A DNA stretch of 32,863 nt from Polymyxa betae A26-41 (lineage: Eukaryota > Protista > Endomyxa: Phytomyxea), in the NCBI GenBank assembly GCA_003693705.1, contig RBZT01000173.1:1-32863 (forward strand). The letters are read 5' to 3'. Of this stretch, positions 1,000-27,288 are shown piece after piece. Position 1 is the stretch's first letter; each line of letters begins with the position of its first letter. Made by a program: the position numbers and the translations under genes. The notes beneath the pieces are model-generated. The model searched no databases and had not been told where the DNA came from. It worked only from the letters and a program-made list of their open reading frames with translations.

Positions 1000-2465
1000 T
1001 TATTCAATGGGATCATCACAGCTGAATACACAATTTCTCCTCCATAGTTCATAATGAAGATGTCCTGGACTAAAATATTCGCTCATCTTGTTTGAATAAT
1101 CACTGACCCAATGTGTTAACTGAACAGAGAAAACATTCCGATCCGAGAGATCCCGCAGCATCGACTGCGTATCACGTCCACGTTGATCCAGGTACTCGTC
1201 CACGTCCCAGAACCCGAACATCTGATTGATATCATACAGCAACGGCCATTCGGATCTCTGCAATCGGGTCTCGGACTCCGTGGCCGTCGACAGCAATGTC
1301 TCTACAAGCAGATGACCTCCCATGGCGACATCACCAAGACCCGGGTCGGCTTCGACGTCCGGGTACGCCCTCGCCATTCCGAGCAGCGCCTTACGCAGGA
1401 ACGGATGATGCCGGTCGAACTGGCCCAGGATCCCGTTCGTGCAGTACCAGGTGCGGCCTGCGATGAACGGCAGCGAATCGTTGAAGGGTTGCTGGATGTC
1501 GTGATCGGCGTCGCACTGGACCCAGCGGTGTCCGTGACCCACCGTCACCCGATCGTGACACGGGAGGCCGTTCCGCATCGTGAACGGCCTCAGGTACAGG
1601 GCGTCCGCGTCCAGCCACGACCCGCCGTGAAGGTACAGTACGGCCAGACGGACAAAGTCCGACAGAATCATGGGCGATCGTTCGATCGCCGGCCACAGCT
1701 GCGCGGCCCAAGTCGAAGTCCGGAAGACGGCGTCGTCGAGTTCCGGAAGAGCGTCCAGGAGTTGGAGTTGCAAGTCGGTCAGGTTGAGCGGGACCATGAC
1801 GACGCGGAGATGATGGGCCGCGAATCTCGGATCGATGGCGTTCAGATTGCCGTAGATATAGAGGGTCGTGTTCGGGTTGTTTTTCAGAAACGATTCGAAG
1901 CCGAGTTGGTACGCTCGAGGTAACGTGGACTGCGTTACCACTGCGAACGCATTTTGCGAAGTCGCGGGATAGTGTGCGGATGTGGATTGCAGTTGGCAGA
2001 CGCTGTGTGAGAGAGCGTCTGCGCTGATCTTCGAGTCCATCTCCAAATCGGATTTCAACGAAATCGCCTCCGAATCTAATGTCATTTGTTAACGTAAAGA
2101 ATTGGCTGTTTTGAAAATCAGAAAATTGTTGGTATATTTCGTTACTCAATAAGCGTGTGATCAAAAACGACCCTTGTAACATAGAGTAATGTGAAACTTG
2201 AGCAAACTTGAAACATTAACAGTAGATTGAAAGCGTTTTTTAAACAGAAATGGATCGAATGTCTCTAACCACTCTGAAGAGTTACCAGCTGTGTCATAAA
2301 GTGCAGTTCTAAGTAATGTAACGATATAGTTGTTATGGCGACAATACTGATTGCTATCCAGGCAACGATGATCAGAAATGGACGACATCTTGAGACTGTC
2401 CTGGCTGAGATCGTTCTGGATCTCCATCTATCAATATTCCGATCCATGCCACCATTGTACATCAT
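1000..2465 (-). CDS. GT32-family (alpha-1,4-glycosyltransferase/OCH1-like) type II membrane glycosyltransferase, ~423 aa, 2 exons
   Basis: SDFVRLAVLYLHGGSWLDAD is the GT32 SD..R...LY..GG.Y.DxD signature; ESFLKNNP lies upstream. A TM exon at 2465-2270 (FLIIVAWIAISIVAITTI) joins exon 2075-1000 in phase through a predicted intron 2269-2076 (GTTAGA...TTAG). The exact donor is uncertain. Confidence 0.85.
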
Positions 2466-3409
2466 AATCTGTTAGTCAACCGAGCGGAATAAAGTACTTC
2501 CAGATAGGTGGACGATACCCGCAGAATGACGAGTGGGCGCATGCCTCCAGAATGAATCTACGAATATGCAAACCCTAACCCTAAAATTGATTTCACACTG
2601 AAGCACCTCTGTAATTACAATATGTCGGCAGCCTGACAAAACTGATTGAGGGCTCTGAAACAGGTTTTGACTTCGAAAATTTAGAATGCCGGAGACACAC
2701 ATTCCTCGGATGCTTTTTGGATGATTTTAAAACTTCCATTCTCCAAGACTGCGATATTTCGTATTTCTCACTGTTACGTTCCCATCTCGACTAGAGTAAC
2801 GATTGGCTCTGGTAAAAGATATTTAAGTCTTCAGTCTATAGCGGATGGTGTGGTGCCGTCTATGTCTTACGCGATATCCATCAACGCTGCCCATCCGAAT
2901 CCGTGCAGCTTTAACATGGAAATAGCACAATGCTCTGAACTCCCGCCATGGTTTCGTCTAATATCAATGAATCGTATGAGCGTGAAACAAGCTCTCATAT
3001 CTGAACATAGCGTGATGCGCTTTTATCGCAAATGCGAAAAATGTGTTATAATCTCTGAGTTGCTTGAAATTCTAATTCTCCTTAACATGAGTGAAAAGAA
3101 GGGCTGAATAATCTGCGAATCACCCAGTAGGAGACCCTGGACCTCAACTCAGGCCCGTTTAACTGTGCCGCCCACACCGCTGAAAGGAGCAGATAGTGCA
3201 ATCAAATCCAATCCAAATGCATGAAAATGGAGTGGAATGAAAGCTCTAGGTTTGGAGCGAAGCCTCCATTATCTCGTACGAAACCTCTTCGACATTGACT
3301 GATTCAGGATTCCCCACGGGTGCGGCCTCTTGGGGTTGTGGGAGGCTACGCCACAATAAGTGACTGGCTCGACACCTCTGCGGAGCAGCCTCTTCAGTCC
3401 TCTCTTCAG

Positions 3410-3606
3410 ACAGTCCCTTGACCCTTCTTTTCTTGACCATTCTGCAGCGCGGCCTCTCTCCAGTTCTTGCTTTCTTGACCTTTTCAGCAGAGCGACCTCT
3501 TTCCAGTTCTTGCAGAGCGTCCTCTCTTCAATTCTTGACCCTTCTGTGAGCGGCCTCTCTCCAATTGTTGACCCTTCTGCGAGCGGCCTCCCTCCAGTCC
3601 CTTGAC
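3410..3606. repeat. Degenerate ~33-bp pyrimidine-rich minisatellite
   Basis: Recurring TTGACCCTTCTG.GAGCGGCCTCTCTCCA.TT units; this explains the repetitive ORFs at 3269-3613 and 3360-3605. Confidence 0.75.
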
Positions 3607-3738
3607 ACTTCACTATTTATCATCACCATCTTGTATCTGTACATAAAGTGGTAATGTCATCTCGTCATAGTATGGCAGCCATTTCGGGTGTAGCCATTTA
3701 GCCCAATTTTTTTAGAAGGCTATTTGCAGCAATAGTTT

Positions 3739-6669
3739 ATGATCAGTCAAGAGCCAGTTTTGGTAGGGCCATGGCGCCGTCTGGCGGCTGTCGCTTTAGT
3801 CCTGATTTTCGCTACAATCTGTCTCCTCAGTGTCGTTACTGTCAGTCACGTCAATGATGATCGTCTGCTTTTATCACCAATGTCATCGTTATCTTCCTCG
3901 TTGCATAATCGAACAAGGCATGAATGCAGCGATAACCGCGGTGGTCGTGTGGCTTTGGTGACCGGTATTAATGGCATGATTGGATCTCATGTAGCTCGGG
4001 CTCTTCTCGAATCGAATCGTGCTTGTTATCATGTCGTTGGTCTAATTCGTCCACGATCTGATCTATCAACTCTAGCTGGTATTCTGGATCAGATCGAATT
4101 TGTGCAGGGAGATATTACTGACAGCCATCGTATGATTACCATCATTCAGGAGGTAAACTTTCTGCCTTTACAACTTTAACTTTTTTTATTCAAAACCCAT
4201 TTTTTCTACATTTCTGAAACCTGAAGCCCTATCTGCTTTCTATTCAACATAATCGTTCGATGGATTTATTATTCCAAATTTAAAATGATCGCTTATACAA
4301 GTCTCCTCTATTGAATCGTTTCCGGCCAGGTTGATCCGGATGTGATCTTCCATTTCGCCGCTCAAGCAATCAATGGAATATCGCTCGGTATTCCTCAAGT
4401 GACCGTCGACGCCAATATCCAGGGCACCATCAATCTATTCGAAGCCATCCGACGTTGGGGTCGACACCCCCGCGTCTTGGTCGCCGGCTCCAGCACCGAA
4501 TACGGACAAGCTGCCGAGCGCCATACTGGTCCCATTCCCGAATCGCTGATTCTGGATCCCGTAACGCCCTATGGAATCAGCAAAGCTGCCACCGAGAAGA
4601 TCGCCAATCAGTATGTGATCGCTGCTGAGATTCCAGCGGTCACGGCGCGTCTGTTCATTCATGTTGGCGTCGGTGGGACGGACTCGCTCGCCATCCATCA
4701 GTTCTGTAAGCAGACGGCGCTGGCCGAGCTCGGTCTAGCCGCCCCTGTGATTCGTCATGGGAATCTGAAGACGGCCAGAGATATCACCGATGCGCGTGAT
4801 TCGGCACCGGTTTTGATTCAGCTGGCCGAAGAGGGCGTTCCCGGCGAAGCCTATAACGTTGGTTCCGGGAATACGATTCATATCAAGGATCTGTTAGCTA
4901 ATGTAATCGATCAAGCTCGTGTGGTGATGACGCACGAGCAGGATCCCAAACTGTTCAGATCATTCGATGAGAAAGTTCTCGTTGCCGATATCAGCAAGAT
5001 TCGCGGCCTTACTGGTTGGCGTCCGGCATCCGATATGAGCACGACGGTTGGCAATATCATGGCGTATTGGCGACATAAAGTTCACACATTATACTGTGTT
5101 GAAGACGGTGATGGGGTCAACCCGTGTAAGACGGCCGTGAACAGCGACCCGGCTGCTGACAATGGCACTGTCGCCCCGGCTGTGAAATGCCAGTTTGCCG
5201 ATGTCGATCTCTGGGTTCCCCTTCATGAACCGGAGTTCCCAATGCTATCATTGCTGGTTAATAGCATCAAGACGTTCATGCCATGTTTCAATACGCTGCA
5301 TATTGTCGTGGATCGACCTGATGCCACCAAAGCATTATCATGGTCAGTTGTAGTTATTCTGAACGATTTTTTTCTTTATTTTTGCTTTAACAAGGGTTTT
5401 GGGGTTTTCTTTATATGTTGCTGACCTTTGAATTAATGAAGTTTCTATGTTTGTTAACGGCTATCAGGGTGGTTGAAAGCGATGGTGTTGATGGCATCGG
5501 AAGGATCCGAATCGAACCTGTCGATTTCCCAGAAGCGCTTTCAGCTATCAAAGGGCAGCGATTAGATGGGTATATCGTACAAGCGTGGCGTATGCTCTGG
5601 GCGGATCAATTCTCGGCCACGACCGGTGCGAAATACGTCATGTTATTGGATACGGATTCGATATTCGCCATGCCGGTGACGTGTCGTTCGATCTTCGATG
5701 ATGAAGGCCGAATCTATCAGCTGTCTTGGTCGATTGAGCGGCAAACACACTTTCAGCAGCCTTGTATTGATATGGTCTTTAACATCGTTCTATACGAGAT
5801 GAAGAACTCTGATTTGTTCAATGCAGACAGGAGGTCAATGTACTCGCAGCTATATGGCCACATTTCCCTTCATCATGCCAATCGACGTGTTCGCTCCGAT
5901 GCGGGAATCGATTCGGCAGCGATTAGGGGGCGCCACGTTCGACCTGGCGTTCGGCTCATGGGCCCAACATTCGAACTGGCGATTCTTCTCCCAGTTCGTC
6001 ACTATGGGAGAGTATATGCGACTTAATCATCCTCATGTAAGCCTTATCTCGGACCGAAACATATTCACGTTTTTCCAAAGTTTTTGCCCTTGTTTCAGAT
6101 CATCGATAATATTATATTTTCTGCTTTTTTTTCTGTTTTTTTCTATTTTGTCTGAGAATTTCCTCTCTTGACTATGTTTTCAAAACATAACAATTTCGAT
6201 TGCTTAACCAACGTCATAGCGTGTTCGCCAAGTTTTCTGTCCAATCTGGAATGATGGCGTTGACAACTCGGCCGTTTTCAATGCATCCGACGATGCCCGG
6301 CTGTGTCTGCAGCACGTCCCCGTGACCGTCCACCTCGGCTGGGCCAACAACGCCTACGTCAACGGTGGCACCGGGACCTCGTATCGCCGGGTCGACGCCG
6401 GCGAGTTCAACCGCTACTCGGATAAATACGGCGTCGCCACCATCGATGCTGTTCAAGCCATGACCATTCACGGAATCTGTCTCCGGGATCGCTGGGCCAA
6501 CAAGGACAACCCGTTATGCCACGATATCAACAGTACGACCGTGTTCCCAGACCTTAATCTGTATGGTGACAAACGTCAGCTCGATTGGTCTGTTATTGAG
6601 GAAAGATTCAAGCCTGATGATGGCAGTATTCTGTGTTCTGCAGGATCTCGCAGATCTCAATTTGTGTAA
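3739..6669 (+). CDS. Membrane-anchored fusion: GDP-sugar extended SDR (GMD/RMD-like) + C-terminal DxD glycosyltransferase-like domain, ~797 aa, 5 exons
   Basis: Exons 3739-4152, 4330-5342, 5468-5774, 5827-6036 and 6220-6669 join in phase through GT-AG introns. Motifs: N-terminal TM LAAVALVLIFATICLLSVVTV; TGINGMIG (GxxGxxG); FHFAAQ; GSSTEYG; PYGISK (YxxxK); GNL...RDITDARD. The second domain has LLVNSIKTF, GYIVQAWRMLWADQF and VMLLDTDSIF (resembles DUF6492-type GT-A). Confidence 0.85.
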
Positions 6670-6906: not shown

Positions 6907-8303
6907 TTATAAATTTTGTAAAGTTGGAAACTGGTACCCGATATCATTCAATGCATTAATCCAGTATTGCTGCAGTCGAACATCTTCAATATGAATATAT
7001 CCTCTCTCATACAGCTCTATCGCTAATTCTTCAATCCGTCCTGGCAGGCTGTTCTGCTCTCCTTTCCATTCGATCAGGAAATCGAGCAATGCCTCCGCCC
7101 TCTCATACAGAGGAATCTCCGAGTCGAGATCGGCGAGATAGTTATGCGGATTGCGGAACTGATTCACGAGCGGGGGCGAGTACGTCACCCGTAGGCCCAG
7201 ATCCCAAAGCAATCGCTGTCCGGAATATCCGCGCCAGATATCCGACACCCGCCCGTGGACGGAAATCGGCAGCAATAACATCCAGAACGCCGCCCTTCGG
7301 AACAGGCACGCCTGGGCGTTCAGCGGGGCCAGTACGCCCCGGGGCAACAGGATCGGGAGGGCGTCATCGGCGGCGTTGAAGTTGAAGGGCAGCGGCTGCG
7401 TTAATCGATAGATGGCGTCCATATCCGGATCGTGATCGGCCAGCGACTGAATCAGACCGATGGCGTTGCCGTCGGCGACTTTCCGGACCAGTTCGGAGTT
7501 CCAGGCGGCGTCTTGTTTGATATGAGTGAGAGGGATGCCTCGGGGCCAGACGGGGCGATGGGGTGCCCCAAGTCTCACATACGGATTGTATGATGGGAAT
7601 TGATGGGTCTCGGGAACTCGAACCGGAACTCGATCATGATCGGACGGCGTCGGAATCTGTTTGTCGCTTTTCAGGATGTTGTCGTCGTCAAAGTCCCAGA
7701 TGAATTCGGCGCCTCGCTCGATCGCATACAGAAATCCGATATTTTTCCGCCCGAAATGATTCCATGGAAGGGCGGCGAATAGCTGTGGAAAGCGGCCGCC
7801 ATATGTGTGCTGATCGTCGGCGTTAAGGTAGACGATCGGGCTGGATGCATCCGGGACTTGATAGATGCGAGGTGATTTCCGATCGCCGACCACCACAATA
7901 CACCATTCAGGTCCCAGATTCGCCTGACGACGAACCGCATCGGATGGCTCGAATATCGTCGTCACAACCGACCATTTTGTGCATTGAAATTGTGATCGGG
8001 ATTGATTAACTGCTATGGGCGCCCATCCGGAAAACATCACGTTTTCTTTTGGAAAATTTCGAATTTTCAAACCGGAGAATACTTGCCCACTACAGTCAAA
8101 CATTTGAATAAAACGTTCTGTTTTTGGCCATTTTTCTACCTGGTGGCAGTCCCCGAAAGCGTTTCTGGTTCGATCCAGGTGTCGGATAGGGTCGTACTGG
8201 TCAACGAGGTATTGATGAAGACGATGGCGATCCAGATGAATGAGAGACCGGTTAGGATGGCGACCACCTTCGGATTTCTCCATTCTGATTCTTTGTTCAA
8301 CAT
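6907..8303 (-). CDS. STELLO/DUF288-like glycosyltransferase, ~448 aa, 2 exons
   Basis: Motifs WSVVTTI, VVVGDRKSP, LPWNHFGRKNIGFLYAI, IWDFDDDN, PRGIPL, DPDMDAIYRL and RVSDIWRGY match STELLO. The likely first exon 8303-8140 (MLNKESEWRNPKVVAILTGLSFIWIAIVFINT) is in another frame, joined by a 50-nt intron 8139-8090. Confidence 0.92.
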
Positions 8304-8677: not shown

Positions 8678-9833
8678 TTATCCATAGATATGATGGGGTT
8701 GACGTCGACATTGTTCCGGCGCTGTTGTCCAGAATGTTGCCGAACCATGTTGACGATATGATGGCCATAACGCCAGCTTCCCATTCGACAACATTTCCGT
8801 GGCGGTTGTATCCTGAACCAGGCCCACGAAATCGCCGTGATAATCGCGAGGCAATGGGAACGCCGTCGAATGGTTGCCGTGATCGCCGCAATGGAATGCA
8901 TCATGATCGACAACATCGTCTCCAACGAGAGGCCAGATAACATCCTCCAGCCATCTCTGATCTGTATCCCATGATGGATTCGGCAATCGCTCATCAACAT
9001 ATCGGGTCAGGTTGCCGCCAACATCGCCCAACTTCGACCTCAAAGTAGCTGCATGGACACCCCACATCCCCTACGGGCCAGTACGGCGCCTCATTAGAAA
9101 CGCATTGATGCACTAATACACAAACCCAGACAAAGAGCGCTTCGAAAGCGTCAAGAAGGATGACTGTTTGAAGGATGAAAAGTTTTGTAGAAAAATCGCA
9201 AAAATCTATAAAAGCTTTTGTAGAAAAAAGCGGAAAAAATGTGGTTGTTACCCCGGGTAATACAAACCAATGATTAGGATGATCTCTCATAATATGAAAG
9301 GTCTTATTAGTCTGCAGCCAGGTGTTCACCGACGAGATCTCGCGGGCCGAGATCCGGGAATCGGCATCGCGGAACAGGGCGTACTCGACCTTGGGATCGG
9401 ACAGAACCAGGAACCGGAAGATACGCTTGGCGTTGCCCCAATGGGAATAGTTCCCCGGCAGCTGGATAACGGTGCCGCCCGCCTCCCGAAGCTGATCCTG
9501 AAACACGCCGGGAATGGTCTCGTCCACGACGAAGATCGATCGCCATGATAGATAATACAGAGGGACGGCCGCCGCATTCGCCAAAGCTCCATCCCGATCC
9601 ATCCCGCGATCGCCATACAGAGAGAACACCACGACCTTGTTCGCCTGCATGAACGCAGGGCGGCGTACGTGCGGCGTACTGGACCCGGCGTGGCGAAGCA
9701 GGTCCGGACGTATGGCATGGGCCTGGTTGCGTCCGATATCGGTAACCTGGAGGACAGTGGCGCCCAGAGCCAGTACGGCGGCGGCCTGTACGAGCCGATG
9801 TAACCAGGAGCTGCTGAATACGTGACCTTTCAT
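8678..9833 (-). CDS. Uncharacterised RDxDSR/RDHPxH/GGMWG family protein (putative GT-A), paralog A, ~324 aa, 2 exons
   Basis: N-terminal hydrophobic anchor, then FSLYG..GALANA, RIFRFL, FRDADSRISARE, FHIMRDHPNH, DQRWL..VIWP and HDAFHC. Intron 9251-9071 restores LPG|GMWG. Confidence 0.85.
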
Positions 9834-10372
9834 TTGATGGGTGAGATGAGGGTGGTTGATGAGCTGGCCTTTTTAATATGGGCGGAATCTGATATTTGGG
9901 AGGGTCACAGAACATGACGCAACCTGAGCTGCATCTTCAGATCAGCATCAATACAATACATCGATATATTCGGCAGGACGCCCTTGGCAGAGGATAACCC
10001 TTCAGAGCTCGAGAACTCTGACAGATAGAACCATACAGATCAGGTCCGAAACAGATGAATATTTCGGGTTTTATTTAATCGCGACATCGCTTTGCCCCAG
10101 ATTAAACCCCAGCTGGGGGCGCCTTCTCTATCTTATCCTGTTTTTGCGTTATTCGAACATGAAGCCGCCCAGGCTCAAACAATGTCTGCAGCATTACGAC
10201 AACGACCGTGGCTGCCATTCGTGGGATCAGTACGACCTCAAGGAAGGGGGTGCGGCCCTGCTTCGTCGTATGACCATACCCGTCATAGTCTCAGGCATGA
10301 ACTGTGTCGCCTCACTGGATGTGTTGTGATCCATCCCCCTATTAAGGATCATCATCATTGGATTGTTGCAAG

Positions 10373-11793
10373 ATGATCGCAGGACGGGGTGATCGTCGTG
10401 GTCGTACTGGACCGGGCCTCATGACGGAGTCCATCCCAGCCCTACTGAATCGTCATCGGACCCAGATCTATCTCATTGCTATTATAACGTTATCATCATT
10501 CCTAACATGGAATATGTTCCATATGTCATTGCAGGCGTACTGCCCCTCGCCCACTAACGTCCTTGATGGACGGTTGACTGGTCAGGACAGCGTCGTGGTC
10601 GCATTCGACGTAACCGAGCAGGAAGCGCGGTCCAGTCCGCAGCTGGTAACGTCAAGTAACGTGCCCGGGCCGGGGTTCGAAACCGATCTGTCGTCCGGCG
10701 GTCGTGCTGACCCAATGCCAACAACAATCGAATCGGGCGACGATGCTGTGATGAGTAACGTGTCCGAGTCGAGTCAGGTCCCAGCTGAAACGTTACCTGA
10801 CCAACCAACGCAGTCGATTGCAGCCGAGTTCTCCGATCCGGAACCGATTCGGACCCCGTCACCGACGGATCTCTACTCCGGGATTCTGCAATGGCGTTAC
10901 CATCAGCAATGTCAGACGGGTCTCCCGTTTGCTGCGAGCCAGTACGACGATCTGATAGGACAGATAGAGGCGCAGGATGAGTTCTCTGCAGTACAAGTTG
11001 GATATGAGATGTGGAATCGACTCAGTCTAGAAGAGGTTCAGTCTCCCTATCGATATTACGCCGATCAGGGAGCCGTGACGGACACCGCTCTGGCCTATCC
11101 ACTCACGATACTCTCCTACGGGCAACGTCGTGAGCAAGGCCTGCAACAGCTGGAACGGATCGGCGCCCACCACACTGATCTGGTGTCGTACCCGTCCTTA
11201 GATGCCGCATTCCATGATCGTCCTTATCTATCCAGATATCTATTTCGTAATGCCATTAATATGGAATGGGATAGATTTACATCATTCTTCTCTGGTAAAG
11301 ATCAGGGCTATCTATTAAGTACATTGAATCAATGGATCGTATTGGAGCGCCTTAAGAACGGCACCTATCCGGATGAGGTTTTTGTTGTCGAGGACGACGT
11401 GTTCATGGTGCCAGATTTCCAGAGGAAGTTCGGCGTTTTAAGGGAGCAGCTGGCCACGTTGCCATGGGAGGTAGGCAGGCAGGAGTTGTGCTAGGGTTTA
11501 GGGTTTTAATGGATGCTCAGGTGGTGTTTGTTGGGACTTGTCATCAGATCAAGTCGGATAGGGAGGCTTCATCGAACTTGTTTGTAGCAGATGCCAGCCG
11601 TTGTTTTAATGCAGTTCTGTTAAGACGTAGCGCGGCTGTAAAGATATTAGAGGCAGGCGCTGTATTAGATGAATTTCAAGCTGTTGATCATATGTTTAAT
11701 ATCTATATACCAACATTGAATCTAACTGCATATTATGTATATCCACCATTAGCCTATGAGCAAACTAAAATATCACATATTTATCCATGCTAA
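10373..11793 (+). CDS. GT25-like type II membrane glycosyltransferase, paralog A, 2 exons (start at 10373 or 10421)
   Basis: TM IYLIAIITLSSFLTW and a Ser/Pro/Thr-rich stem, then GYLLSTLNQW, VVEDD, PWE|VVFVG, NAVLLRRSAAVKIL, VDH and YYVYPPLAYEQ in GT25 order. 50-nt phase-0 intron at 11471-11520. Confidence 0.8.
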
Positions 11794-12027
11794 ATACCAT
11801 TTTGTCACAGATTCATCTTTCACTTTTTATGTTGGGAATCGCCTTGACCGCTTGATGGCGATGAACTCGCGGTGCGATTCGTTCGAATAGGTCGGATGCA
11901 TATTTCAATTTGATAACGATATGATAGATTCGGTCACAGAAATTGCATCAACAGCCCGAGGGTTGCTGCTACGTCAGACCTCGATTGTTTGTCTATGCAG
12001 AATCAGCTCCATTGATCCACCAATAAC

Positions 12028-13507
12028 ATGTTCGGATCATACTGTCGACGACCGAAATCCAAGCGATCGCTGCCCGCCGACCGACTCCGATCTGTGCTTT
12101 CGCTGCAATGGGTCCAGCTCAGGTCCCAGATTCCACCCGTCCTGCTGCTCCTGGTCGGCGTACTGGCCCTGGCCCTATACCAAAATCGGATCGGGTTCGA
12201 ATCACAGCAACAGAATGCCGCTATGGGGCAGCCGTCAGCCCCAGATATCGTGCGTCTTTATGATGGCAACAGGCTCTTGTCATAGTTTCATGAAATCTTG
12301 AAAATTTTCGGAAACTTTTCGGAGAATTTTCGCCAAAAATTTACCTCATTTTCCCTGCCTGCACATTTCTTGCGGTTCTTCGATGCTGACAATACAGGTG
12401 TACAGGACCTCGGATGGAAGGCTCCAAGGTGGCTCCGGGACTATGTTCAATTCTGTGGTGAGCCGGATACAGACACCACCCGATACCTGATCTGGTCCTG
12501 TACGGATCAATACTGCAGCGGAATCGGGGATCGAATTCGCGGCATTCTCACGGCCTTCTATCTGGCTGTTGGGACACGACGCAAGCTCAAGATTCACTGC
12601 ATCAAACCTGTCAATTTGAACCGATCGCTGCAGCCCTCTTGGATCGACTGGTAACGTGTTGGACGGTTACGTTACCCTTGGGCTGTGTAACATAACTTCC
12701 CCCAGGTCGACCGATGCCGACATCCTGTTCGCCCAAGCCCCCGAACGTGTTCGTGTTCACGCCCGCAATGACACTCTGGCCTACGCATACGATACCGACC
12801 ATCTTCGGATTGCTTCAATCTTCACGACGGCCATGGAGCAGTACGCCCTGTATTCGGCCCCGCAGTTCGCCGCACGTTTCTACGGTGATGAGATCCGTGT
12901 CGGACCTGATAACTGGGACCTATTAGCGACCTGGGCCTGGGATGTGTTGTTCCAGCCTTCGCCCGAACTTCAGGCCGAGATTGACGCCGTTCGATCTGAC
13001 GCCGATCTCTCCGGTGACTATATCGCCGTCCACGTTCGTCATGGCGGTCATTGGGGCGATTGGTTACGTCATGATACGGATCAACAACTCTCTCAGTTTA
13101 TCGAATGCGCCACCAATATGACCAAGTCGATGGGTGGAGATCCACTCATTTATGTCGCCTCCGACGATGTCTGCGTCAAGGAGGAGTTCCGGAAGGCGTT
13201 GGCTGCGGTCCGGTACGACCCGCAACCGCCGCGGCATATCGAGAAGACGCGGGATTATGAGGAACAGCTGAGGATCTGGGCCGAGTTTGAGGTGATTCGT
13301 CAATCGAGTTGTATTGTGGCAAGTTTGAGCGGATTCTCATTATGGCCGGTTATGACAACTCGTGATCCTGTATCAGGGAGAAGATGTTGGGCGAGATTTG
13401 ATCGATGTTCTATGGAGATGATATTGAGATCAAGATCGGGCACTATACCAGCGTATGATGCACCTAGTGCTAATCATCCAGATTTCGGTATTACAGCACT
13501 ACCTTAA
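12028..13507 (+). CDS. Fucosyltransferase-fold protein (GT23/GT37-like motifs), ~422 aa, 3 exons
   Basis: TM PVLLLLVGVLALALY; SGIGDRIRGILTAFYLAVGTRR; IAVHVRHG (motif I); IYVASDD (motif II); SGFSLW (motif III). Exons 12028-12249, 12406-12650 and 12706-13507; the first acceptor is somewhat uncertain. Confidence 0.82.
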
Positions 13508-15642: not shown

Positions 15643-16746
15643 ATGAAATCCTTTCGTCGACTGTCGTTTATAGCGATGCTGTCATCGGCGACCACCATCG
15701 TCGTCCTCATTATGTATCTTTGTATACCTGAATCTGCTATCCCATCAAGCTCATCATCTCTGGAATCGTTCTATATTCCATCTTTCAACGGCACTTTTAG
15801 CGAATATTTGACATTCTCGCCCATATCTACTGGCTTTAATTTCTCTGAAGAATTCCATCACGAGAAGTCGTCTCCACCAGAAATCGCCTCACATTATCCA
15901 GACGAATCCCAACGTCAGTTCCCGTATCCATTCGTATCCGGCGATATGTTCCGGTTCACATCCGATTTCATATTCGACGAGAACGATTACAGGAACCATT
16001 GGGGCCCGGGTCATGTTGGTTCTTGTCAGACCGTCTTTGTCAAGAACAACCTTCTTGGCGACTTCTTCGACGACGTCTTCCCTCATATTCGCCACCCGTT
16101 TATCTTAATTTCGCACAATGGTGACGATCCAGCTCCAGGAAGGTTTCATGGGCATTTAGCCGATCCAAGAATCTACTCCTGGTTCGCCCAGAATCTGGAC
16201 GGGACCCAGCACATGAAACTTCGTCCGATTCCAATCGGCATCACGAATAGCCAATGGGAGACCGGCAATCTTAACGAATGGCGCCGTGCTTTAAGCAGAG
16301 ACCTACCTGGTTGGGATGAGAGAGACACTCTGCTCTTTATCAACTGGACCGATGTAAACAACCCTATAAGAAAGCTGCTGAAGGAGAAATTTCGCCATTT
16401 CACCAAAGATACGGTTGTGGGAGAAGGCAACCATGAGCAGTTCCTGCACAACCTTACTCGAACCAAATTCGTCCTGTCACCGCCTGGGAAAGGCATCGAT
16501 TGTCATCGTCATTGGGAGGCGATATTGATGGGAGCTGTTCCTATCGTGTTAAGGTCGGGACTCGACCCGCTCTTTCAGAATGCACCGGCTGTGGTTGTTG
16601 ATGATTTCAACGATATCAGCGAGGATCTGCTGAGGGCGCTCAGGCCATCTGAAAGCTATAATCGTCGCATTATGTGGGCAAATCTCTGGCTCGGTATGAT
16701 TAAGAATTCTGTTCAAGAATGCCTCGCAAGGAGATCGGAAAGTTGA
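15643..16746 (+). CDS. Exostosin/GT47-like GT-B glycosyltransferase B, 367 aa, intronless
   Basis: TM near the N-terminus; PFVSGDMFR; ILISHNGD; WFAQN; PIPIG; KFVLSPPGKGIDCHRHWEAILMGAVPIV. Confidence 0.85.
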   Translation: MKSFRRLSFIAMLSSATTIVVLIMYLCIPESAIPSSSSSLESFYIPSFNGTFSEYLTFSPISTGFNFSEEFHHEKSSPPEIASHYPDESQRQFPYPFVSGDMFRFTSDFIFDENDYRNHWGPGHVGSCQTVFVKNNLLGDFFDDVFPHIRHPFILISHNGDDPAPGRFHGHLADPRIYSWFAQNLDGTQHMKLRPIPIGITNSQWETGNLNEWRRALSRDLPGWDERDTLLFINWTDVNNPIRKLLKEKFRHFTKDTVVGEGNHEQFLHNLTRTKFVLSPPGKGIDCHRHWEAILMGAVPIVLRSGLDPLFQNAPAVVVDDFNDISEDLLRALRPSESYNRRIMWANLWLGMIKNSVQECLARRSES

Positions 16747-17420: not shown

Positions 17421-19370
17421 ATGCAACACAACAAACAACGTCGTGGTTGGAATGAGATATTCGGTAGCAGCCGCTGGAGAGTATGTAGCAGTATTACCGT
17501 CCTCATTGCTTTCGTTCTGCTTTCTATGAATGGCTTTATAAAGCCAATCAACACACAAGTATCATGGCTGCCAAAACCATCAGCGATGGATCCTCCTCGG
17601 TCTCTTATTCATGGTCTAGAACCTGTCTTCAAGAATAATGGATGGACTGCTATCGACAATCCATGTGCGAAGTTGCCATTCGATCATCGCGATACTGTTA
17701 ATTGGTTAAAGCAACGTTATTGGTGCGATCGTCAACGATATTTTCTAAGGTCAGTTGCCAAGTTTTACTTTCTTTTTCTAAGGTCGGTTGCGAGTTTTAC
17801 TTTCTTTTTCTAAGGTCATTTGCGAGTTATACTTTCTTTTTAGGTCAGTTGCGAGTTTTACTCTCTTTGGATTCCAAAACGTCTCTGCTGGTTGATCATG
17901 TAAACATTGATGATTTTTTGTGTTCGTAGAGGACATCGTAATCATATGAATCCGACCCAAGAACGTTGGTCGAAGCTGAATCCGAAGCTAAACGTGAAGG
18001 TTGATTACAACCGATACGTCGTTAGCGGGCCTGGTCTTGGAGCTACAGTTGAAGGGCGGATTCTGGCCGGTCATACTCGCCTACCAGCAGAGATCGCTCA
18101 AGCACCTGCATATACTGGACAGCAACATAACTGTTCTGTCGGGAAACCATGCGGCTTTCAGATACGAACTTTCGATTCACAAGGCGATCCTGTCAATCAT
18201 AACGAGGCCCGATTCAAGGCCCGGTTGTACGGCACAGCTATCGTCGACGCAGACGTCATGAGTATTGGGGGCGGCGTCTATAACGTGTCGTACACGCCCT
18301 ATGACGCCGGCATGTACTTGATCCAAGTACTTTTAACGTCGGTTGATGGCGAGGGATTGGGCCCCGAATTCATCAATCGCAACGCTCCATTCCTGGTGAA
18401 CGATCTCATCTATCAATCCGAACACCTCCTGCACGTTGTTTGGCAAGACGATTCCGACGATGCTGTCGTTTCGCAATGCACGACGGCCGATCTAGAACGG
18501 GGACGATGGGTGTATGTCGAGAACGAATGTCGCCGGCCGTACTGCACGATGGCGCCCGGCGTCACGCTGTCCGATTTGCAGATCAATGATCCGCTGGGAT
18601 TGAACTGGAACTATGTCTGGGTGCCCATTGATTGTTATTATCATCTGTATACGCCTCTGGAATTTCATCAATGTACTCAGCAATGCGGATATTCGCAATG
18701 GTCGCTATCAGGCGATTCATTGGGTCGAGAGATGCTGCAGAATCTGCAGATGATTCTCACCGATTATTCGCCGAGTTTCGCGATGCCCAAATTGAAGTTG
18801 GGTGGCCCACATTGGTCGAATTCCATCAAGTTCAGAGATGTCACCAACTTCTCTGTCAACTTTGTTATGAATGAATATCATGAGACCGATGATGTCGCCG
18901 TCCTGCATTTACACAACGCCCATCAGCTGACGAGCGGCACTGGCGTCTCCGCCCTCTTTCCAACGAACTTCGCAACGATTGAGGAATTCGCCAGAAACTG
19001 CACCAAGAATCCCAAACAGCGATGTTTCTATTATGTGAATCCCGCTATACAACGTGAAGCCGATCACAGCAACAATGAAAGATTGCAAAGGTCGTTCTAC
19101 CGAGATGTTACGCGAGATCGTATGCAGATCTTCAATATGGCATTACGTGATCATGCCAGATCTCAAAATCTGTCGATTATTGAAGGAGAGATGCCCACCC
19201 GATCAAGATGGCAATCGTGTTGGGATGGAATTCATTATAGCGAAATGTTCGATCATTTCGAACCCGGAGATTCGAGATGGTTTGGAGGAGCGAGTATGAT
19301 GATCACACAGACATTCATTAATGCAATTTGTAATCAGCCATGTTATGCGATGGAAACTACCAGCTCATAA
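17421..19370 (+). CDS. TM + filamin-type Ig + PC-esterase/SGNH domain (NXPE/TBL-like) putative glycan O-acetyltransferase, ~589 aa, 2 exons
   Basis: Exon 17421-17749 (TM ITVLIAFVLLSM) joins exon 17930-19370 through a phase-2 intron. Filamin-like FQIRTFDSQG...GGGVYNVSYTPYDAGMYLIQV; GRWV...WVPIDC; catalytic GDS (LSGDSLGRE) and DxxH (WDGIHY). Confidence 0.85.
17741..17868 (+). repeat. Four tandem 29-33 nt copies of an exon-intron junction
   Basis: AGGTC recurs at 17748, 17781, 17813 and 17842, each followed by a variant of AGTTGCGAGTTTTACTTTCTTT. Confidence 0.9.
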
Positions 19371-19767: not shown

Positions 19768-20989
19768 CTAAAGAGCTTTCTCGAAATCCGCTGTGAATCT
19801 TTCTAGACGCTGAACATGCTGAGCACCTTGTCCATCTCCATTCAGAACATGTTGTAATAGCCATTTCGACATATCAAAGATCTCATGATAGGTTCCTCTC
19901 GTATCTGGAACACGCGGCAAATGCGAGTCGAATTTCGTGTCGATTTCGGCCGCGCTTAATGACGATGGCCATCCAATTCGATCGATTCGATTTCGATTGG
20001 TTCTGTACTTAACTAGAACATCCCTCTCCCAGACAATGCTTCCCGTGATTTGAGCCGTTTTCAGCCGTAAACTGACCAATTGCTGATCCCAGAACCATTC
20101 GTTTCCCGTATTAAGCAACGTCGTCCGAATATCCTCGTTGACTCGTTCACAGATATGCTGTTCGGGTGATATGGCGATTGGTGAGATGGGGGATGGAAGA
20201 CGAAGAATCTGTCTCCATCTAAGACCTGTCATACCAATATTTGATAGAGCCCATTCCTTGAAATTATAACCCCATTTATCATCGGTCGCCTGAAACTCTT
20301 CCAGATCGAATAGGAGAATAGGCTGACGTTCCTGCCAGGCCATCGATGTCAACGTCTGATTGGCCAGACGAGCATCGAACGAATCGTAATACTGTCCTTG
20401 GCCTGTAGCGATCGGGAGCAGATCGACATCGGTCGTGATCAGGTAATCGTGATCTCGAATGAACGGCAGCATCGATGCGTATAATCGTGATAGTTGAGTT
20501 AATCGAACCCGATTATCTGGTAGCGAGGAATCGCCTGTTAAATAATAGACATGTTGGATATCATATTCAGCGAGTAAATCTATGATCAGCTGAGTATGGG
20601 AATGATTTCTCCATCCGCTACCAGGCGAATCTTCAACCAGAAAGACACTGAACGATATCATCAGTGAGGGGAAAACCCTAAACCCTCAGCACCTACATTG
20701 GCGTGAATTCCTGTCGTATCTTCCATGCTAATACAACAGCTGGTAGCCAATAGGCATATTTCGCATCCGTTCCGACACTCAATACAGCATAACGACGTCT
20801 TGGTGCGACGATCATCTCATCGGATGAGGTCTCGTTCCGAACGAGAATCTGAGCGCCAAATGTGCCCATCGTTGGCATCGGTGAGCGACAGTTTTCGCTC
20901 AGCACGAATACGATCAAGGCTGTTGATGCTGATACAACTGATACCAGCAATAAGATGGGACCGAATCTCCTGCGCTTGATCTCCTCCAT
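19768..20989 (-). CDS. Uncharacterised type II membrane DxD protein (putative GT-A), ~390 aa, 2 exons
   Basis: TM ILLLVSVVSASTALIVFVL; YAYWLPAVVLAW; TQLSRLYA; YLITTDVDLLP; IGM...WR; WFWDQQLVS; RIDRIGW; DSHL. 49-nt intron 20696-20648 gives EFTPI|VFLVE. Confidence 0.75.
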
Positions 20990-21963: not shown

Positions 21964-23193
21964 ATGGATCGACGGAAATCGCTGAATGTGACACGAACGC
22001 AGATCTATCTGTCATTGATCATATTCAGCTCATTGATCACCTGCACTGTTCTATCCCTATCTCGTCGTCCATCATCGCTCCAAGATCCCATTCGAATCTC
22101 CAATCACGATAACGAGACCAAATCCCGAAGCGATGGGCGAAACTCGTCGTTGATCGCCCTTCTCCTGCAATCGCCGAACTCCAAAATCGATGAACTTCCC
22201 GGGCACAGCTCGTCGCCGCCGCCATTCGATCGCACCGCCCGGATCGTGCTGGCTCTTCAACGTCATTATCACGACAGCTGTGATCGTGCGCTAACATCGG
22301 ATGAGATCCTGAATCAGGGAATGATCTCGCAGATCGAGAGCAGCGATGAATTCTCGGGCGTCTTGATCGGGACGGAGATGTGGAATCGGCTGAGCTTGGA
22401 CGAGCTCGACGATCCGTTCCGTTTCTACGCCGACCCGACCGACAGCGATTCGGACGCGTTCCCGTTCGCGATTCTGTCGTACGGGAAACGCCTTCAGCAA
22501 GGGAAAGCGCTGCTCGCGCGTATGGGCGCCGATCGGGTCGATTGCGTATCGTATCCGTCGTTGGAGAAGGCGTTCGCCGACCTCCCGTATCTGTCCCGAT
22601 ATCTGTTTCGTGATGCAGCGATGATGAATTGGGATAATTTCACGATGGAGTTCTCTGGAAAGAATCACGGCTATTTATTAAGTACATTGAATCAATGGAT
22701 GATCTTTGAACGATTAGCGAATGGGACCTATCCCGATCAGGTCGTCATCGTTGAAGACGATATGTTCCTGGTCCCAGATTTCACCAGGAAGTTTCGGGCG
22801 CTGCGATCGCAATTGGCTACAGTACCCTGGGATGTAAGAACACGCTAGGGTTTAGGGTTTTCTCCAATATTCTCGTTTCCAACGCCATCGTGATACTAAC
22901 CGTCGGGCTGTGCGTTTTAGGTCGTGTTCTTGGGGACGTGTTTCGGGATTCGGTCGTACACGCCCGCGACTCCGAACCTGTATGTTGCCGATAGGAGCCG
23001 CTGCTTCAATGCGGTTCTGATGAGGGCCAGCGTGGCCGTTAAGATCCTCGAGGCCGGCGTCTGCGTCGATCGATTCGCTGCTGTTGATCATCTGTTCAAT
23101 CGTTATATCGTCGATCTGAATCTCAACGCTTATTATGTGTATCCACCATTAGCGTATGAACAGTCGAAGAATGTAATACAGCATCCTTGTTAG
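21964..23193 (+). CDS. GT25-like glycosyltransferase, paralog B, ~380 aa, 2 exons
   Basis: Shares RTQIYL, EMWNRLSL, PYLSRYLFR, GYLLSTLNQW, VEDD and YYVYPPLAYEQ with paralog A. Intron 22834-22920 is at the identical codon position. Confidence 0.82.
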
Positions 23194-23582: not shown

Positions 23583-24515
23583 TCACATTATAGTTCGTGA
23601 ATGATTCCATAAATCCTCGTCATGTAATATTCGTTTCTTTTCATCGTGTCCATGTAAATAATTGGCATGAACAATGACCGGACCTTGTGGATATCTCACC
23701 CAATCATATCCTTCAATCCACATGATCTTCCCGTTCGGGAATACCGACCCCGGCACCGTATAATGAGCGTACTGGCCCGCGATGTTGTTCTTGGCCCGAT
23801 TCAACGCGACCTGATCGTCCTCGGTCGGATCGCTATTCGCGAACACGATCCATTCGTGAATGAGTTGTTGCGATGTTTGTTTGGGCGTGAAATACAGCAG
23901 ACACGAGCACCAATACCCATCGGCGCCATCTTCGGAGACGATCAGATCGAGATCGGTGTGATTGGCGAGAATCGGCTCGAACACGCGATACGGATTGCTT
24001 CTATAAGCTGTATCAACATCGGAATAGAACACCGAATATCCCAGCTCAAGAAGCGCCTTCAGCATGCTCGGTCGCGATCGCGTCAGCTTTCGGAATCCGT
24101 TCGAGGCGTATTCGACCGCGGGCGTCTCCGCTTCCGTTGAGATCGGGAGCAGGACGCGATTCGTGTGATTTAACGCCCAATATGTTCGATTATCATAGGC
24201 CATAATCACGTAATTCTCAACACCAACTCGGGACGCCATTCGTCGCCAATCGTCGAACATATCCAGATAGCCCCAATTGACGCCCACCACCGTGATTCGA
24301 TTCTGGTCGTCCGCGAATCGATCCAGGAAACAGGTCGACGGCGGCCAGGGGTCGTACTGACCCGGGCAGGAGGCGATCGCTGGTTGAGGCGCTCTTGGAT
24401 TCAGATAGCGGCTGAGCAATGATCCGATTAGACATGTTGATAGCCCGATGAATGTGAGGACGACGAGAAGTCGAGCACGTCGAGAGGAGCGTCTTGAACG
24501 CGTTTCTAACAGCAT
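23583..24515 (-). CDS. GT77 / nucleotide-diphospho-sugar transferase family protein, ~310 aa
   Basis: Likely ATG at 24515 ahead of a basic tail and TM (RRARLLVVLTFIGLSTCLIGSLL). Motifs NWGYLDM..W, LLELGYSVFYSDVD....NPY, DDQVALN, FPNG and IVHANY....KK....LW. Confidence 0.92.
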   Translation of the reverse strand: MLLETRSRRSSRRARLLVVLTFIGLSTCLIGSLLSRYLNPRAPQPAIASCPGQYDPWPPSTCFLDRFADDQNRITVVGVNWGYLDMFDDWRRMASRVGVENYVIMAYDNRTYWALNHTNRVLLPISTEAETPAVEYASNGFRKLTRSRPSMLKALLELGYSVFYSDVDTAYRSNPYRVFEPILANHTDLDLIVSEDGADGYWCSCLLYFTPKQTSQQLIHEWIVFANSDPTEDDQVALNRAKNNIAGQYAHYTVPGSVFPNGKIMWIEGYDWVRYPQGPVIVHANYLHGHDEKKRILHDEDLWNHSRTIM

Positions 24516-24604: not shown

Positions 24605-25874
24605 CTAGCCATAGATATACGCAGGATGATTTCGGCAGCGTTCTGGCACTTGTTGATGGAAATTCGCATCGCCGCTGCGACGATATTCGGGCCATAGAGC
24701 AGTAATGTGACTATGCGAGAAGTCGGTCATGGCCGGATCCAGAATATGGCCAACATAATCGCCATGATAATCGCGTGGTAATGGGAACCCTTTGGAATAT
24801 GGGGAATACTGCCCACAAAGGAACGCATCGTGATCAACGACATCGTCGTGGATCTGCGGAAACACGACCTGCGACAGCCACTCTTGATCGTCGAATTTGT
24901 CGGCGTTCGGGAGCTTGGGCGTCACGAAGTTCGTGATGCTTGCGGCGACGTCTTCCCCAATCTGCCTTCGTAATATTGGAGCATAGACAGCCCACATTCC
25001 CTGAATGCTTTCAGAGATCGTATTGAATGAATTGGTCTCGTCTTACCCCGAGCATGGTGGTTGTATGAGCTGGATGATCTCTCATAATGTGATAGGATTT
25101 GTTCGATCTCAGCCAGTAATGAACCGATGAGATCTCTCTGGCTGAAATACGAGAATCTGTATCCCGAAACATGAAGTAATCGATGGTTGAATCATTGAGA
25201 GCCAAATATCGGAATATTCGACGAGCTTCACCCCAATCTGTGAAGCTATCTGGCAGAACTCGGACCTCGCCACCAGCAGCACGAATCTCGTTCAACGAAC
25301 TCTCCGGAACCGTGTTATCCACAACAAACAGAGCCTTCCACGATAGATAATACAGAGGAACCGATCTGGCATTGAACACAGCCCCGACTAGATCCATAGG
25401 GCGATCTCCATATACAGTGAATGCAACGAATTTGCGAGCTGTTAGATAGCCAGGACGGGCATAATGACTTAAGCTTTGAGATCCATCTTGGAAAGATTCT
25501 TCGGACGAATCCGTTTCACTAATAAACTCGTGAGATATTATTTCATGAAATGTCTCTTTACATCTCACCCGAGATAGGTAAAGTTGACGTGAGGTTTTGG
25601 CTGCAATTTGGATCTGAAATGTAAAGAGCATAATACCAATAGTAAGGGAACCAGGGACAGAGCAATCGCTGCCTGAAATCTCTTCGGATCGCTCCAATAA
25701 CCCATTGCTATGGCGTTCCGCAGTAAGCTGAAGACGTTGGGAATCAGCACGAACGCTTTCAGTGGTTCGATATCGTCGTACAGGACCTTGATTCAGCAGT
25801 CCGAGTATGACTGACATGCCCATAGTGATGATACAGATTGGACCGCAGCTGCCTCTCAATAGTGATGATTGCAT
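24605..25874 (-). CDS. RDxDSR/RDHPxH family protein, paralog B
   Basis: FTVYGD, RRIFRYL, FRDTDSRISARE and YHIMRDHPAH. 46-nt intron 25046-25001 restores LG|GMWA at the same position as in paralog A; both proteins end in IYG*. Additional introns in the stem region are possible. Confidence 0.85.
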
Positions 25875-25953
25875 GGTCACTCAACGATAAACAGACGTTT
25901 TCCAACTCAACGAAACTTGTTTTTTTTTTATCAAAATTGACTCTATTTGATGA

Positions 25954-27288
25954 CTACTGATGAAGAATCCAGGAAGTGTTGCTCGCAGCGTCTGTTTCAT
26001 GTGATCGGATTGACAAGATCCGGAGCGAGAAGGTGCTGAGTGGAGATCCAACGAAGAAATCGGCTTCAGCACAGGACTGCTGCTCGATCACTGCCCTCAT
26101 GGCAGCACTGAATCTGCAAGCATCAGATCGATCTGGATCGCATCCTATCTGTTTCAATGCTGCAATTCCTTGACGCAGATAATCCCGATCGCCCGAGTCG
26201 CCATTCGTGATGACGAAAACCGATCGAATGGCTCCAGTTCGGTGCAGCTGATTCGCAGCCGAAATGAAGGAATCCATCGGGATCCGAATCAGATCTTCTC
26301 TGCGAACATGCATACAGAGCAATGGACGTTCATGAACAAGCGTCTGATTCCTGGCAAGAGCCTTAATATGACGATTATAAGGAAGATAATACTGGTCATG
26401 ATCGACAGCGAAGAACATCGTCTCTCCATTAATAAAGATTATTCTCTCCTTGGACCTCTGCAGCAGCGCTGCGGTCAAATTCGTGCCATCCACAGTCTCC
26501 ATCCTATCAAACGACAGAGTACTTTTATCGCATTGAAAGCTGCCTGGAAATCTTCCGGAGCCCAGCTGATCCGAAGACGATCTCACGAATGGAATAAGAT
26601 GAGATATGTTAGAGGCGAGGAAAGGCGTATGCGACCATGGCAGCAGCCAGCAATCAACAGACCACGATGAAGGGTTTCTTAGACGCCATGGTGCATCTTC
26701 GGGCGACTCGCCACAGGACAGATTCCTGTTGATTCCTTTCACGACATAATCGGATGCCACAGGATCGTCGTACAACCCCTGAATATGGCATCTATTCGGG
26801 CTCAGATACGAATTCATCACATCCAGGTCCAGAATCTGCAGCCACGACAGACTGAAATCAGCATGATCCTCCATTGCCGTTATTGTTGGTGGATAAACTA
26901 GAATCTTGCGACCCGATAGGTTGGCGTAATAGATAGCGTTGCTGAGCGACATGATGTTGTTCGATAAACGACCATAACCGGAATAGGCAAGAAACCGATC
27001 TTGAGGTAAAGTCCCATAGATTAGCGATGAAGGTTTTGGAGGAGGTTGCGGGTGCAGGATCGTTAGGTGAAGGACCTTATAGCTGATAACAATGAGAACA
27101 GCAATCATAGCCAGGATCGATGTATATGCAAGTCTCCAATGACATCGCCTGCTTTGATTAAGGGCAGCGAGGGCATCTTCAGCATCCTCAGACATGAAGA
27201 TTCTGCTCGATCGGCGTTCGATTTGATGGAGCTCAGCGGTCAGAATCAATGGATCCGACTCTTGATCCCTGCTTGAGCGTTCAGACAT
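25954..27288 (-). CDS. O-fucosyltransferase-family (POFUT GT65/GT68-like) type II membrane protein
   Basis: TM LAYTSILAMIAVLIVISY; GYGRLSNNIMSL..AIYYA...GR.LV; MHVRRED; VFVITN; VIEQQSCAEADFFVGSPLSTFSLRI. First ATG at 27288. Confidence 0.88.
   Translation of the reverse strand: MSERSSRDQESDPLILTAELHQIERRSSRIFMSEDAEDALAALNQSRRCHWRLAYTSILAMIAVLIVISYKVLHLTILHPQPPPKPSSLIYGTLPQDRFLAYSGYGRLSNNIMSLSNAIYYANLSGRKILVYPPTITAMEDHADFSLSWLQILDLDVMNSYLSPNRCHIQGLYDDPVASDYVVKGINRNLSCGESPEDAPWRLRNPSSWSVDCWLLPWSHTPFLASNISHLIPFVRSSSDQLGSGRFPGSFQCDKSTLSFDRMETVDGTNLTAALLQRSKERIIFINGETMFFAVDHDQYYLPYNRHIKALARNQTLVHERPLLCMHVRREDLIRIPMDSFISAANQLHRTGAIRSVFVITNGDSGDRDYLRQGIAALKQIGCDPDRSDACRFSAAMRAVIEQQSCAEADFFVGSPLSTFSLRILSIRSHETDAASNTSWILHQ

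Follow-up and report, generated by a model that had tools for sequence, protein, structure and literature searches.

A compact, multi-family cluster of putative Golgi-type glycan-enzyme genes in the plasmodiophorid Polymyxa betae

Genes for Golgi glycosyltransferases (GTs) are normally dispersed in eukaryotic genomes, and because of this dispersal it is difficult to deduce the glycan pathways of eukaryotes from genome sequences. The biosynthetic gene clusters of plants and fungi, which arise by duplication and relocation, make small molecules with soluble or endoplasmic reticulum enzymes, and in the plasmodiophorid lineage we know of no biosynthetic clusters. The fungal galactosaminogalactan (GAG) locus has five genes, a deacetylase gene among them, and centres on a plasma-membrane synthase. 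Three described systems come closest to a linked set of diverse glycan genes: 1) chromosome 19 of Ostreococcus tauri, the small outlier chromosome of this member of the Mamiellales, which is enriched in non-homologous GTs grouped with sugar-modifying enzymes, and for which surface-glycan remodelling has been proposed, along with the idea that the local grouping reflects pathways (PMC5082852); 2) the five-gene GAG exopolysaccharide cluster of Aspergillus and Metarhizium (PMC8224951); 3) the clade-specific fibril glycosylation clusters of the Megavirinae, with 6-33 genes for nucleotide sugars, transferases and acetyltransferases (PMC10117803). Here we describe a run of 14 glycan-enzyme-type genes on a 32,863-nucleotide stretch of Polymyxa betae A26-41 DNA (the window; contig RBZT01000173.1, hereafter C710). 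P. betae is a beet root parasite and rhizomania vector whose resting spores persist in soil.

The 14 genes (g1-g14; Table 1) lie consecutively across 1000-27288 of C710, an interval of about 26 kb in which neither a housekeeping gene nor anything else recognisable is found. Reading frames are open in all of them; four are single-exon genes, and canonical GT-AG splice solutions are available for each of the 10 that require introns. Every predicted protein begins with a hydrophobic segment (Kyte-Doolittle 19-mer values of 2.0-2.9 in 12 of the 14, weaker in g4 at 1.55 and g5 at 1.41), from which we infer that they are type II membrane enzymes of the Golgi. For 12 of the 14, sequence or fold evidence directly supports a glycan enzyme, with g6 and g10 as weak leads. 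Searches with the intron-bearing genes were done exon by exon, joined exons serving solely for frame and hydropathy checks; the g4/g13 fold derives from an intronless paralogue on contig C98. No NCBIfam model matches the cluster above its cut-off. About 12 families are represented, or 11 when the distantly related g7 and g8 are pooled, and only two pairs are close paralogues (g4/g13 at 48-56% and g5/g11 at 59-67%). The initial annotation of this sequence had described 14 anchored genes of glycan-enzyme type without a housekeeping gene among them, drawn from roughly 11 families, with two close paralogue pairs that left tandem duplication insufficient as an explanation; the reading frames, GT-AG models, hydropathy and Pfam or fold evidence confirm this observation. 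The genes occupy both strands with no operon arrangement. Transporters for sugar nucleotides or the acetyl donor and a regulator are missing from g1-g14, so the cluster is not self-contained, and methyltransferases, transposons and membrane proteins other than the anchored enzymes are absent from the 14-gene block.

The P. betae draft comprises 27,085,946 bp in 1,001 contigs with 45.1% GC (PMC6328671). Per-gene and family searches recovered about 32 homologous or comparable loci outside C710, spread over more than 20 contigs of this 27 Mb genome; the density test is built on family searches, so these genome counts are lower bounds, and the GT8 and GT31 family searches were blank and uninformative. 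Even assuming 600 glycan-enzyme genes, the genome-wide Poisson probability of at least 12 in 26 kb is 2e-9, and the comparison of GT density with the genome background, on which the initial annotation had made its reading depend, comes out in its favour. If at least three adjacent non-homologous enzyme genes beyond chance are taken as the mark of a cluster, the locus has 14 genes of about 12 families, and the clustering is non-random. Tandem duplication accounts for g4/g13 and g5/g11 only. For seven of the 12 families an intact paralogue at 41-70% is dispersed in the genome; g1, g2, g3, g7 and g9 have no intact copy elsewhere in the genome, and the paralogue neighbourhoods that were inspected are mostly ordinary. 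The dispersed paralogues, the intronless state of several genes, the transposon-like flanks and the dispersal of the Plasmodiophora brassicae orthologues (see below) would also suit a neutral duplication sink, in which recent copies or retrocopies of secretory genes accumulate in a permissive, transposon-flanked region with no selection for linkage. We consider this improbable: such a sink is expected to receive any class of gene, yet all 14 are of the glycan-enzyme type, five of them have no intact copy elsewhere, none is broken, and neighbours in the block are fusion partners in other eukaryotes.

That the contig is an assembly or binning artefact, chimaeric or contaminant, is barely credible. 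The draft was binned from a metagenome (PMC6328671) and C710 has an AT-rich end; against this stand spliced transcripts, plasmodiophorid best matches, paralogues across the genome and a 25.1-kb contig in a second DNA run, from 2021. The latter extends over about 1-25,100 of C710, to judge from its coordinates and a paralogue joint, and agrees with C710, and a chimaera or contaminant is rejected on this ground; the two are identical over the 6 kb compared and may come from the same strain. Among four sequencing runs there are 0-1 differences over 6 kb, and the variability between strains that had been suggested for the locus does not appear in them.

The P. betae cluster resembles the Ostreococcus, Megavirinae and GAG systems in grouping unrelated glycan genes and is a member of none of them. 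Chromosome 19 likewise groups unrelated GTs with an NAD-dependent epimerase/dehydratase in a eukaryote; however, it is a whole hypervariable chromosome with methyltransferases, membrane proteins, transposons and many putatively foreign genes (PMC5082852), whereas the P. betae cluster is a compact 26 kb of anchored glycan enzymes only, with native orthologues and no variation seen. Its native best matches and 0-1 differences over 6 kb set it apart from the hypervariable, foreign-looking small outlier chromosomes. The GAG cluster also brings together unrelated eukaryotic genes for sugar-nucleotide, transferase and tailoring enzymes and makes one extracellular glycan, whereas the P. betae cluster has about 12 predicted single-pass Golgi-type transferases; no shared families were found. 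The link to the Megavirinae is closer in sequence, in that the Mimivirus GT25-like protein R655 is the best PDB match of g5/g11, but those clusters are viral and encode largely soluble enzymes, in contrast to a nuclear, intron-bearing and membrane-anchored set. Bacterial O-antigen and capsule loci with gmd-rmd place an RMD-like reductase beside transferases and an O-acetyltransferase, and the g4/g13 and g8 families occur in them; the P. betae cluster differs in its mixed strands, anchors and introns and in having no operon, flippase, polymerase, ABC exporter or gmd, and is thus no co-oriented operon with Wzx/Wzy or ABC export. With plant and fungal biosynthetic clusters it shares non-homologous genes, lineage specificity, dispersed paralogues and a transposon-rich flank, its predicted business being Golgi glycosylation rather than small molecules. 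In the literature searched, with subscription journals and later P. betae genome papers mostly outside the search, we came upon neither an account of this P. betae locus nor one of a dozen single-pass Golgi-type families in a compact run. The earlier statement that no equivalent has been described accordingly holds for a compact multi-family Golgi-type cluster and gives way to partial precedents for the rest (PMC5082852, PMC10117803, PMC8224951).

The most informative member of the block is g2, in which an anchor is followed by an extended short-chain dehydrogenase/reductase (SDR) domain and a DUF6492-like domain. The best PDB matches of the SDR are RMD 2pk3 (E 1e-35) and 6x3b (E 2e-32), both ranking above dehydratases, and the Ser and YxxxK of its S-Y-K triad align with RMD; the identity to RMD is only about one third, SSTEYG stands for SSEEYG, and no NCBIfam model matches at cut-off. 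Where RMD and dehydratases carry Glu, g2 has Thr. This Glu is, we take it, the dehydratase acid of GMD, and because it is replaced the SDR is predicted to be a GDP-keto-deoxyhexose reductase or epimerase. A canonical GMD-like gene is present elsewhere in the genome (contig C536). The C-terminal exons of g2 match (E 3e-9 and 7e-6) a profile built from DUF6492-like domains fused to STELLO, and the adjacent g3 is STELLO-like. The same partners are joined or adjacent in other genomes: 1) a 1428-aa anchored open reading frame (ORF; L032, 473-4759) combines STELLO with two SDRs, one of them 50-59% identical to g2; 2) P0071 and P0090 are STELLO-SDR fusions; 3) in P0060, P0078, P0097 and P0101 STELLO is joined to a homologue of the g2 C-terminal domain, one of these clusters including an acoel protein; 4) on L048 (5656-9800) a transporter-like plus STELLO ORF adjoins an RMD-like ORF; 5) on L269, a JGI contig of a probable phytomyxid, STELLO (61%) is followed by a g2-C-terminal homologue and then an anchored GT8, all within 4.9 kb. 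Since the fused and neighbouring RMD-like SDRs share the motif SST[EV]YG, they look like one anchored, STELLO-associated subfamily. STELLO, the anchored RMD-like SDR and the DUF6492-like DxD domain recur, fused or adjacent, as a eukaryotic module, which offers a clue to STELLO chemistry.

Further links involve other members of the block. A protein of a diatom cluster fuses GT77 with a g11-like domain, and g11 and the GT77 gene g12 are adjacent on C710. Around g4/g13 homologues in bacteria and viruses, nucleoside diphosphate-sugar enzymes adjoin in 23 of 146 loci, g8 homologues in 12 and STELLO in 1, in addition to other transferases. As neighbours on C710 are fused in unrelated eukaryotes, the cluster appears to have a pathway logic, and functional coupling of the pairs g2-g3 and g11-g12 is supported at the level of gene context; the fusions link pairs, not all 14 genes. 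In this respect the earlier proposal of a locus for one glycan is upheld as to a non-random, multi-family Golgi-type cluster with linked neighbours and not as to a single pathway through all its genes.

Contigs from three sequencing runs skip the g5 intron, and one run also skips the second g6 intron (Table 1); because of these skipped introns the runs, which are not labelled so, can be taken as RNA-derived. RNA-type contigs cover g4, g5 and g6, by which at least three members of the block are expressed and spliced. The pattern GTCAC/CGTCA, chosen post hoc and set against a crude background, is found in the 150 bp upstream of each of the 14 starts as against 32-45% in three tile backgrounds; in a held-out set it occurs at 7 of 9 dispersed GT-like starts versus 4 of 14 other starts (p 0.04), and is a lead to, not proof of, a glycan-gene regulon. 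A contig of run X3 (region 11783-12233) skips 11993-12042 with CT..AC ends, which correspond to a minus-strand intron, and would represent a spliced transcript, antisense or small, that lies between g5 and g6 and overlaps the g6 start. Another skip at 10293-10344, upstream of g5, is without clean GT-AG ends.

Taken together, we favour on balance, with modest confidence, a lineage-specific gene cluster for glycan biosynthesis, whose secretory-pathway (Golgi-type) enzymes would work on one acceptor, or on a few linked ones, in one life stage. Most likely it combines an RMD-like reductase with about 12 transferases and a candidate O-acetyltransferase of XOAT1-like type. The type II Golgi enzymes would decorate lipid- or protein-linked acceptors of a structure such as the resting-spore or cyst wall, the zoospore coat or the plasmodium surface. 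The ordinary GMD encoded on C536 would supply a GDP-keto-deoxyhexose, which the g2 SDR would reduce or epimerise, g2 and the STELLO-like g3 forming one module by which an unusual GDP-6-deoxyhexose would be supplied or transferred; g14 and g6, of predicted fucosyltransferase fold, might add GDP-deoxyhexoses, the GT32, GT25-like, GT47-like, GT77 and unnamed GT-A enzymes might build backbone and branches, and g9 might O-acetylate the product, with donors, transporters and regulator encoded outside the cluster. The earlier suggestion of a deoxyhexose-containing, O-acetylated glycan retains the RMD-like g2 and, as a prediction, the XOAT1-like g9 in its support. In a stronger version, which we think rather unlikely, all 14 genes would be co-expressed as a single Golgi assembly line and the locus would be the first compact eukaryotic cluster of many families for secretory glycosylation, with an anchored luminal RMD-like enzyme and a STELLO-like partner making a bacterial-type GDP-6-deoxyhexose (D-rhamnose or 6-deoxy-talose). 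This would assign a biochemical role to the STELLO/DUF6492/RMD-like module that is fused in other eukaryotes.

Several observations weigh against a glycan biosynthetic cluster of this kind. Twelve transferases are many for one repeat unit, and if g2 is a luminal NAD(P)H-dependent reductase its keto-sugar must be imported, the topology of g2 being a prediction. No RNA-type contig for g3 was seen in the three runs covering g4-g6, where contigs give no levels and cannot show absence, and the upstream pattern has the post hoc character noted above. The assignments of g6, g9 and g10 are weak. The P. brassicae orthologues of g3, g8 and g5/g11 are, in all three cases, dispersed among housekeeping genes (on CP145414, a ~1.86-Mb sequence and CP145425), and an ENA contig with a g5/g11 orthologue (L267) has no cluster gene in the visible 10 kb on one side; tblastx links from it to g14 or the contig end were rejected as weak, sum-statistic noise. 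The expectation of linkage in relatives accordingly fails for the three genes tested in P. brassicae, which still fits a lineage-specific cluster. The interpretation of the initial annotation is partly supported. If the favoured explanation holds, the compact cluster lists the parts for one glycan and lets guilt by association be applied to families of unassigned reaction (STELLO/DUF288, DUF6492-like, the RDxD-HxMRDHP GT-A family and g10), and a Polymyxa-specific surface glycan would serve as a diagnostic marker and be a candidate for the host or virus interface. In a lineage without known biosynthetic clusters, the locus can moreover be used to test how gene clusters come about.

A less probable, tentative alternative is that the locus is a chromosomal domain collecting small modules (g2-g3, g11-g12 and others) that serve different glycoconjugates under shared chromatin control, as a smaller-scale counterpart of the Ostreococcus outlier chromosome. 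The many families and donor types, the linking of pairs rather than of all 14 by fusions, the missing g3 in RNA-type contigs holding g4-g6, and a right flank with a retroelement remnant and telomere-like repeats all suit it, as do smaller mixed groups elsewhere: C289 (L116:1775-6778) carries two anchored ORFs, one DUF7796-like and one DUF6492-like, together with broken g4-like pieces; C387 (L115) carries two GT61 matches, a broken g4-like gene and an anchored ORF; and on C256 a GT77 gene adjoins a g11-like gene, as g11 and g12 do on C710. The block is nevertheless unlike the described small outlier chromosomes in being without methyltransferases, membrane proteins and transposons, all 14 genes are intact, and two identical isolates or runs show no hypervariability.

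With regard to origin, the best matches of g3, g8 and g5/g11 are in P. brassicae and Spongospora. STELLO adjoins UBA1 in P. brassicae, and the P. betae UBA1 site is without STELLO; local synteny between the two species is, however, poor at all three sites. No close plasmodiophorid contig emerged from a metagenome scan with g3. The full cluster has so far been seen only in P. betae, with partial linkage and glycan-gene grouping elsewhere. Acquisition of the block from a bacterium or giant virus, as an O-antigen-like or Megavirinae-like locus later domesticated, would accord with how common RMD-like SDRs and the g4/g13, g8 and g10 families are in glycan loci of bacteria and viruses. It is largely refuted and very unlikely: the closest homologues are plasmodiophorid or otherwise eukaryotic (g3 64%, g8 42-46%, g11 43-47%), g2 is 50-59% identical to eukaryote-type anchored proteins versus 25-33% to prokaryotic or viral SDRs, and the genes have eukaryotic anchors, spliceosomal introns and mixed orientations. 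Block transfer is rejected on the best matches, and older single-gene transfers may be compatible with the data. Seven families with a dispersed paralogue and five genes with none accord with a stepwise process, and we propose that the cluster was most likely gathered from native plasmodiophorid genes by duplication and relocation rather than imported as a block; the g5/g11 family tree lacks the resolution to order these two processes.

The remaining assignments (Table 1) are of varying strength. For g1 splice solutions exist, with the start and donor site not fixed, and the genome has no close paralogue. For g4/g13 we gathered 146 bacterial and viral homologues, and RDxD is invariant in the family; the intronless paralogue on C98 folds with pLDDT 84, yields Foldseek matches at E ~1e-6 to glycogenin, PBCV-1 A64R and GT6, and has its DxD after the fourth strand of the modelled fold, by which this unnamed family is assigned to GT-A. 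A viral scan with a single g4-paralogue protein gave no match. One intron occupies the same position in g4 as in g13, whereas dispersed paralogues of g4/g13, g12 and g8 (C98, C134, C912, C256 and C885) are intronless. The g5/g11 profile matches R655 (E 5e-5) and COLGALT1 (E 4e-3), so that the family is, by its sequence similarity, GT25-like; the Pfam GT25 model PF01755 scores below cut-off in one homologue. For g6 no match was found among PDB sequences, and a paralogue reaches GT11 at E 0.17; it is probably, on weak similarity, a GT-B enzyme of the fucosyltransferase clan. A local GT47-like profile matches g7 (E 2e-5), which has no paralogue in the genome. The 128 homologues of g8 mostly carry PF24785/PF03016 and are patchily distributed (many bdelloid rotifers, Rozella, a nematode, Chlamydiia and other bacteria), which suggests old horizontal exchange of this GT47-like family. 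The C-terminal domain of g9 is rare, its GDS and DGxH motifs being kept in two homologues. It has no PC-esterase Pfam match, its PDB sequence search was blank, and Foldseek on its low-confidence model (pLDDT 50) gave nothing under E 0.001; the top match of the model, among several SGNH hydrolases, is XOAT1 (Z 6.5, rmsd 7.7, 161 aligned), making it a candidate XOAT1-like SGNH O-acetyltransferase or esterase. Within g9, the exon-intron junction is present in four imperfect copies (17741-17868), which give several in-frame donor sites. A paralogue of g10 at 70% lies on C882, and a viral scan with the single g10 protein gave no match; as a lead, g10 is a probable GT-A.

Table 1. Positions and assignments of the cluster genes and flanking features on C710.
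Feature	Position	Strand	Assignment	Evidence and gene structure
g1	1000..2462	-	anchored GT32-type (DxD) glycosyltransferase	PF04488 27.1 bits, over cut-off; 2 exons
g2	3739..6669	+	anchor, RMD-like GDP-sugar SDR and C-terminal DUF6492-like DxD domain	PF16363 over cut-off; ~790-800 aa, 5 exons
g3	6907..8303	-	STELLO/DUF288-like, 448 aa	PF03385 over cut-off; 64% to P. brassicae STELLO
g4	8678..9833	-	unnamed GT-A family (RDxD...HxMRDHP), g13 paralogue	family model, Foldseek; RNA-type contigs
g5	10421..11793	+	GT25-like glycosyltransferase, 440 aa	family profile; intron 11471-11520
g6	12028..13507	+	fucosyltransferase-clan GT-B enzyme candidate	NodZ E 0.026, below cut-off; second intron 12651-12705
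g7	13659..14888	-	GT47/RXYLT1-like, 409 aa	Pfam E 0.0015-0.0019, below cut-off; single exon
g8	15643..16746	+	GT47/RXYLT1-like, 367 aa	Pfam E 7e-5 (RXYLT1_C/GT47), below cut-off; single exon
g9	17421..19370	+	anchor, filamin/Ig domain and SGNH (GDS...DGxH) O-acetyltransferase/esterase candidate	PF00630 over cut-off; ~589 aa
g10	19768..20989	-	anchored DxD protein	ESM Atlas nearest named clusters GT77/GT8 at 0.92-0.93
g11	21964..23193	+	GT25-like glycosyltransferase, g5 paralogue	family profile
g12	23583..24515	-	GT77 (Nucleotid_trans) glycosyltransferase	PF03407 E 1.7e-28, over cut-off; single exon
g13	24605..25874	-	unnamed GT-A family, g4 paralogue	family model, Foldseek
g14	25954..27288	-	O-fucosyltransferase-like GT-B enzyme, 444 aa	PF10250 E 2.6e-4, below cut-off; POFUT2 E 2e-4; single exon
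left flank	234..560	-	C2H2 zinc-finger fragment	PF13465 E 3e-8
right flank	29446..31080	-	decayed retrotransposon pol remnant	RT_RNaseH_2 E 9e-8 at 30186-30488; short broken ORFs

Telomere-like TTTAGGG motifs lie within short introns of g5 (11492-11506), g10 (20670-20690) and g11 (22846-22860), and also near other gene ends. To the right of the block are two short direct-repeat arrays (27498-27917 and 31709-32024) with spacings of 76-85 bp and about 100 bp; the second contains CCCTAA-like units. Beyond it the contig end (32100-32863) is AT-rich and holds an orphan ORF of 92 aa. The right-flank arrays and the AT-rich end are possibly subtelomeric or mark a foreign join.

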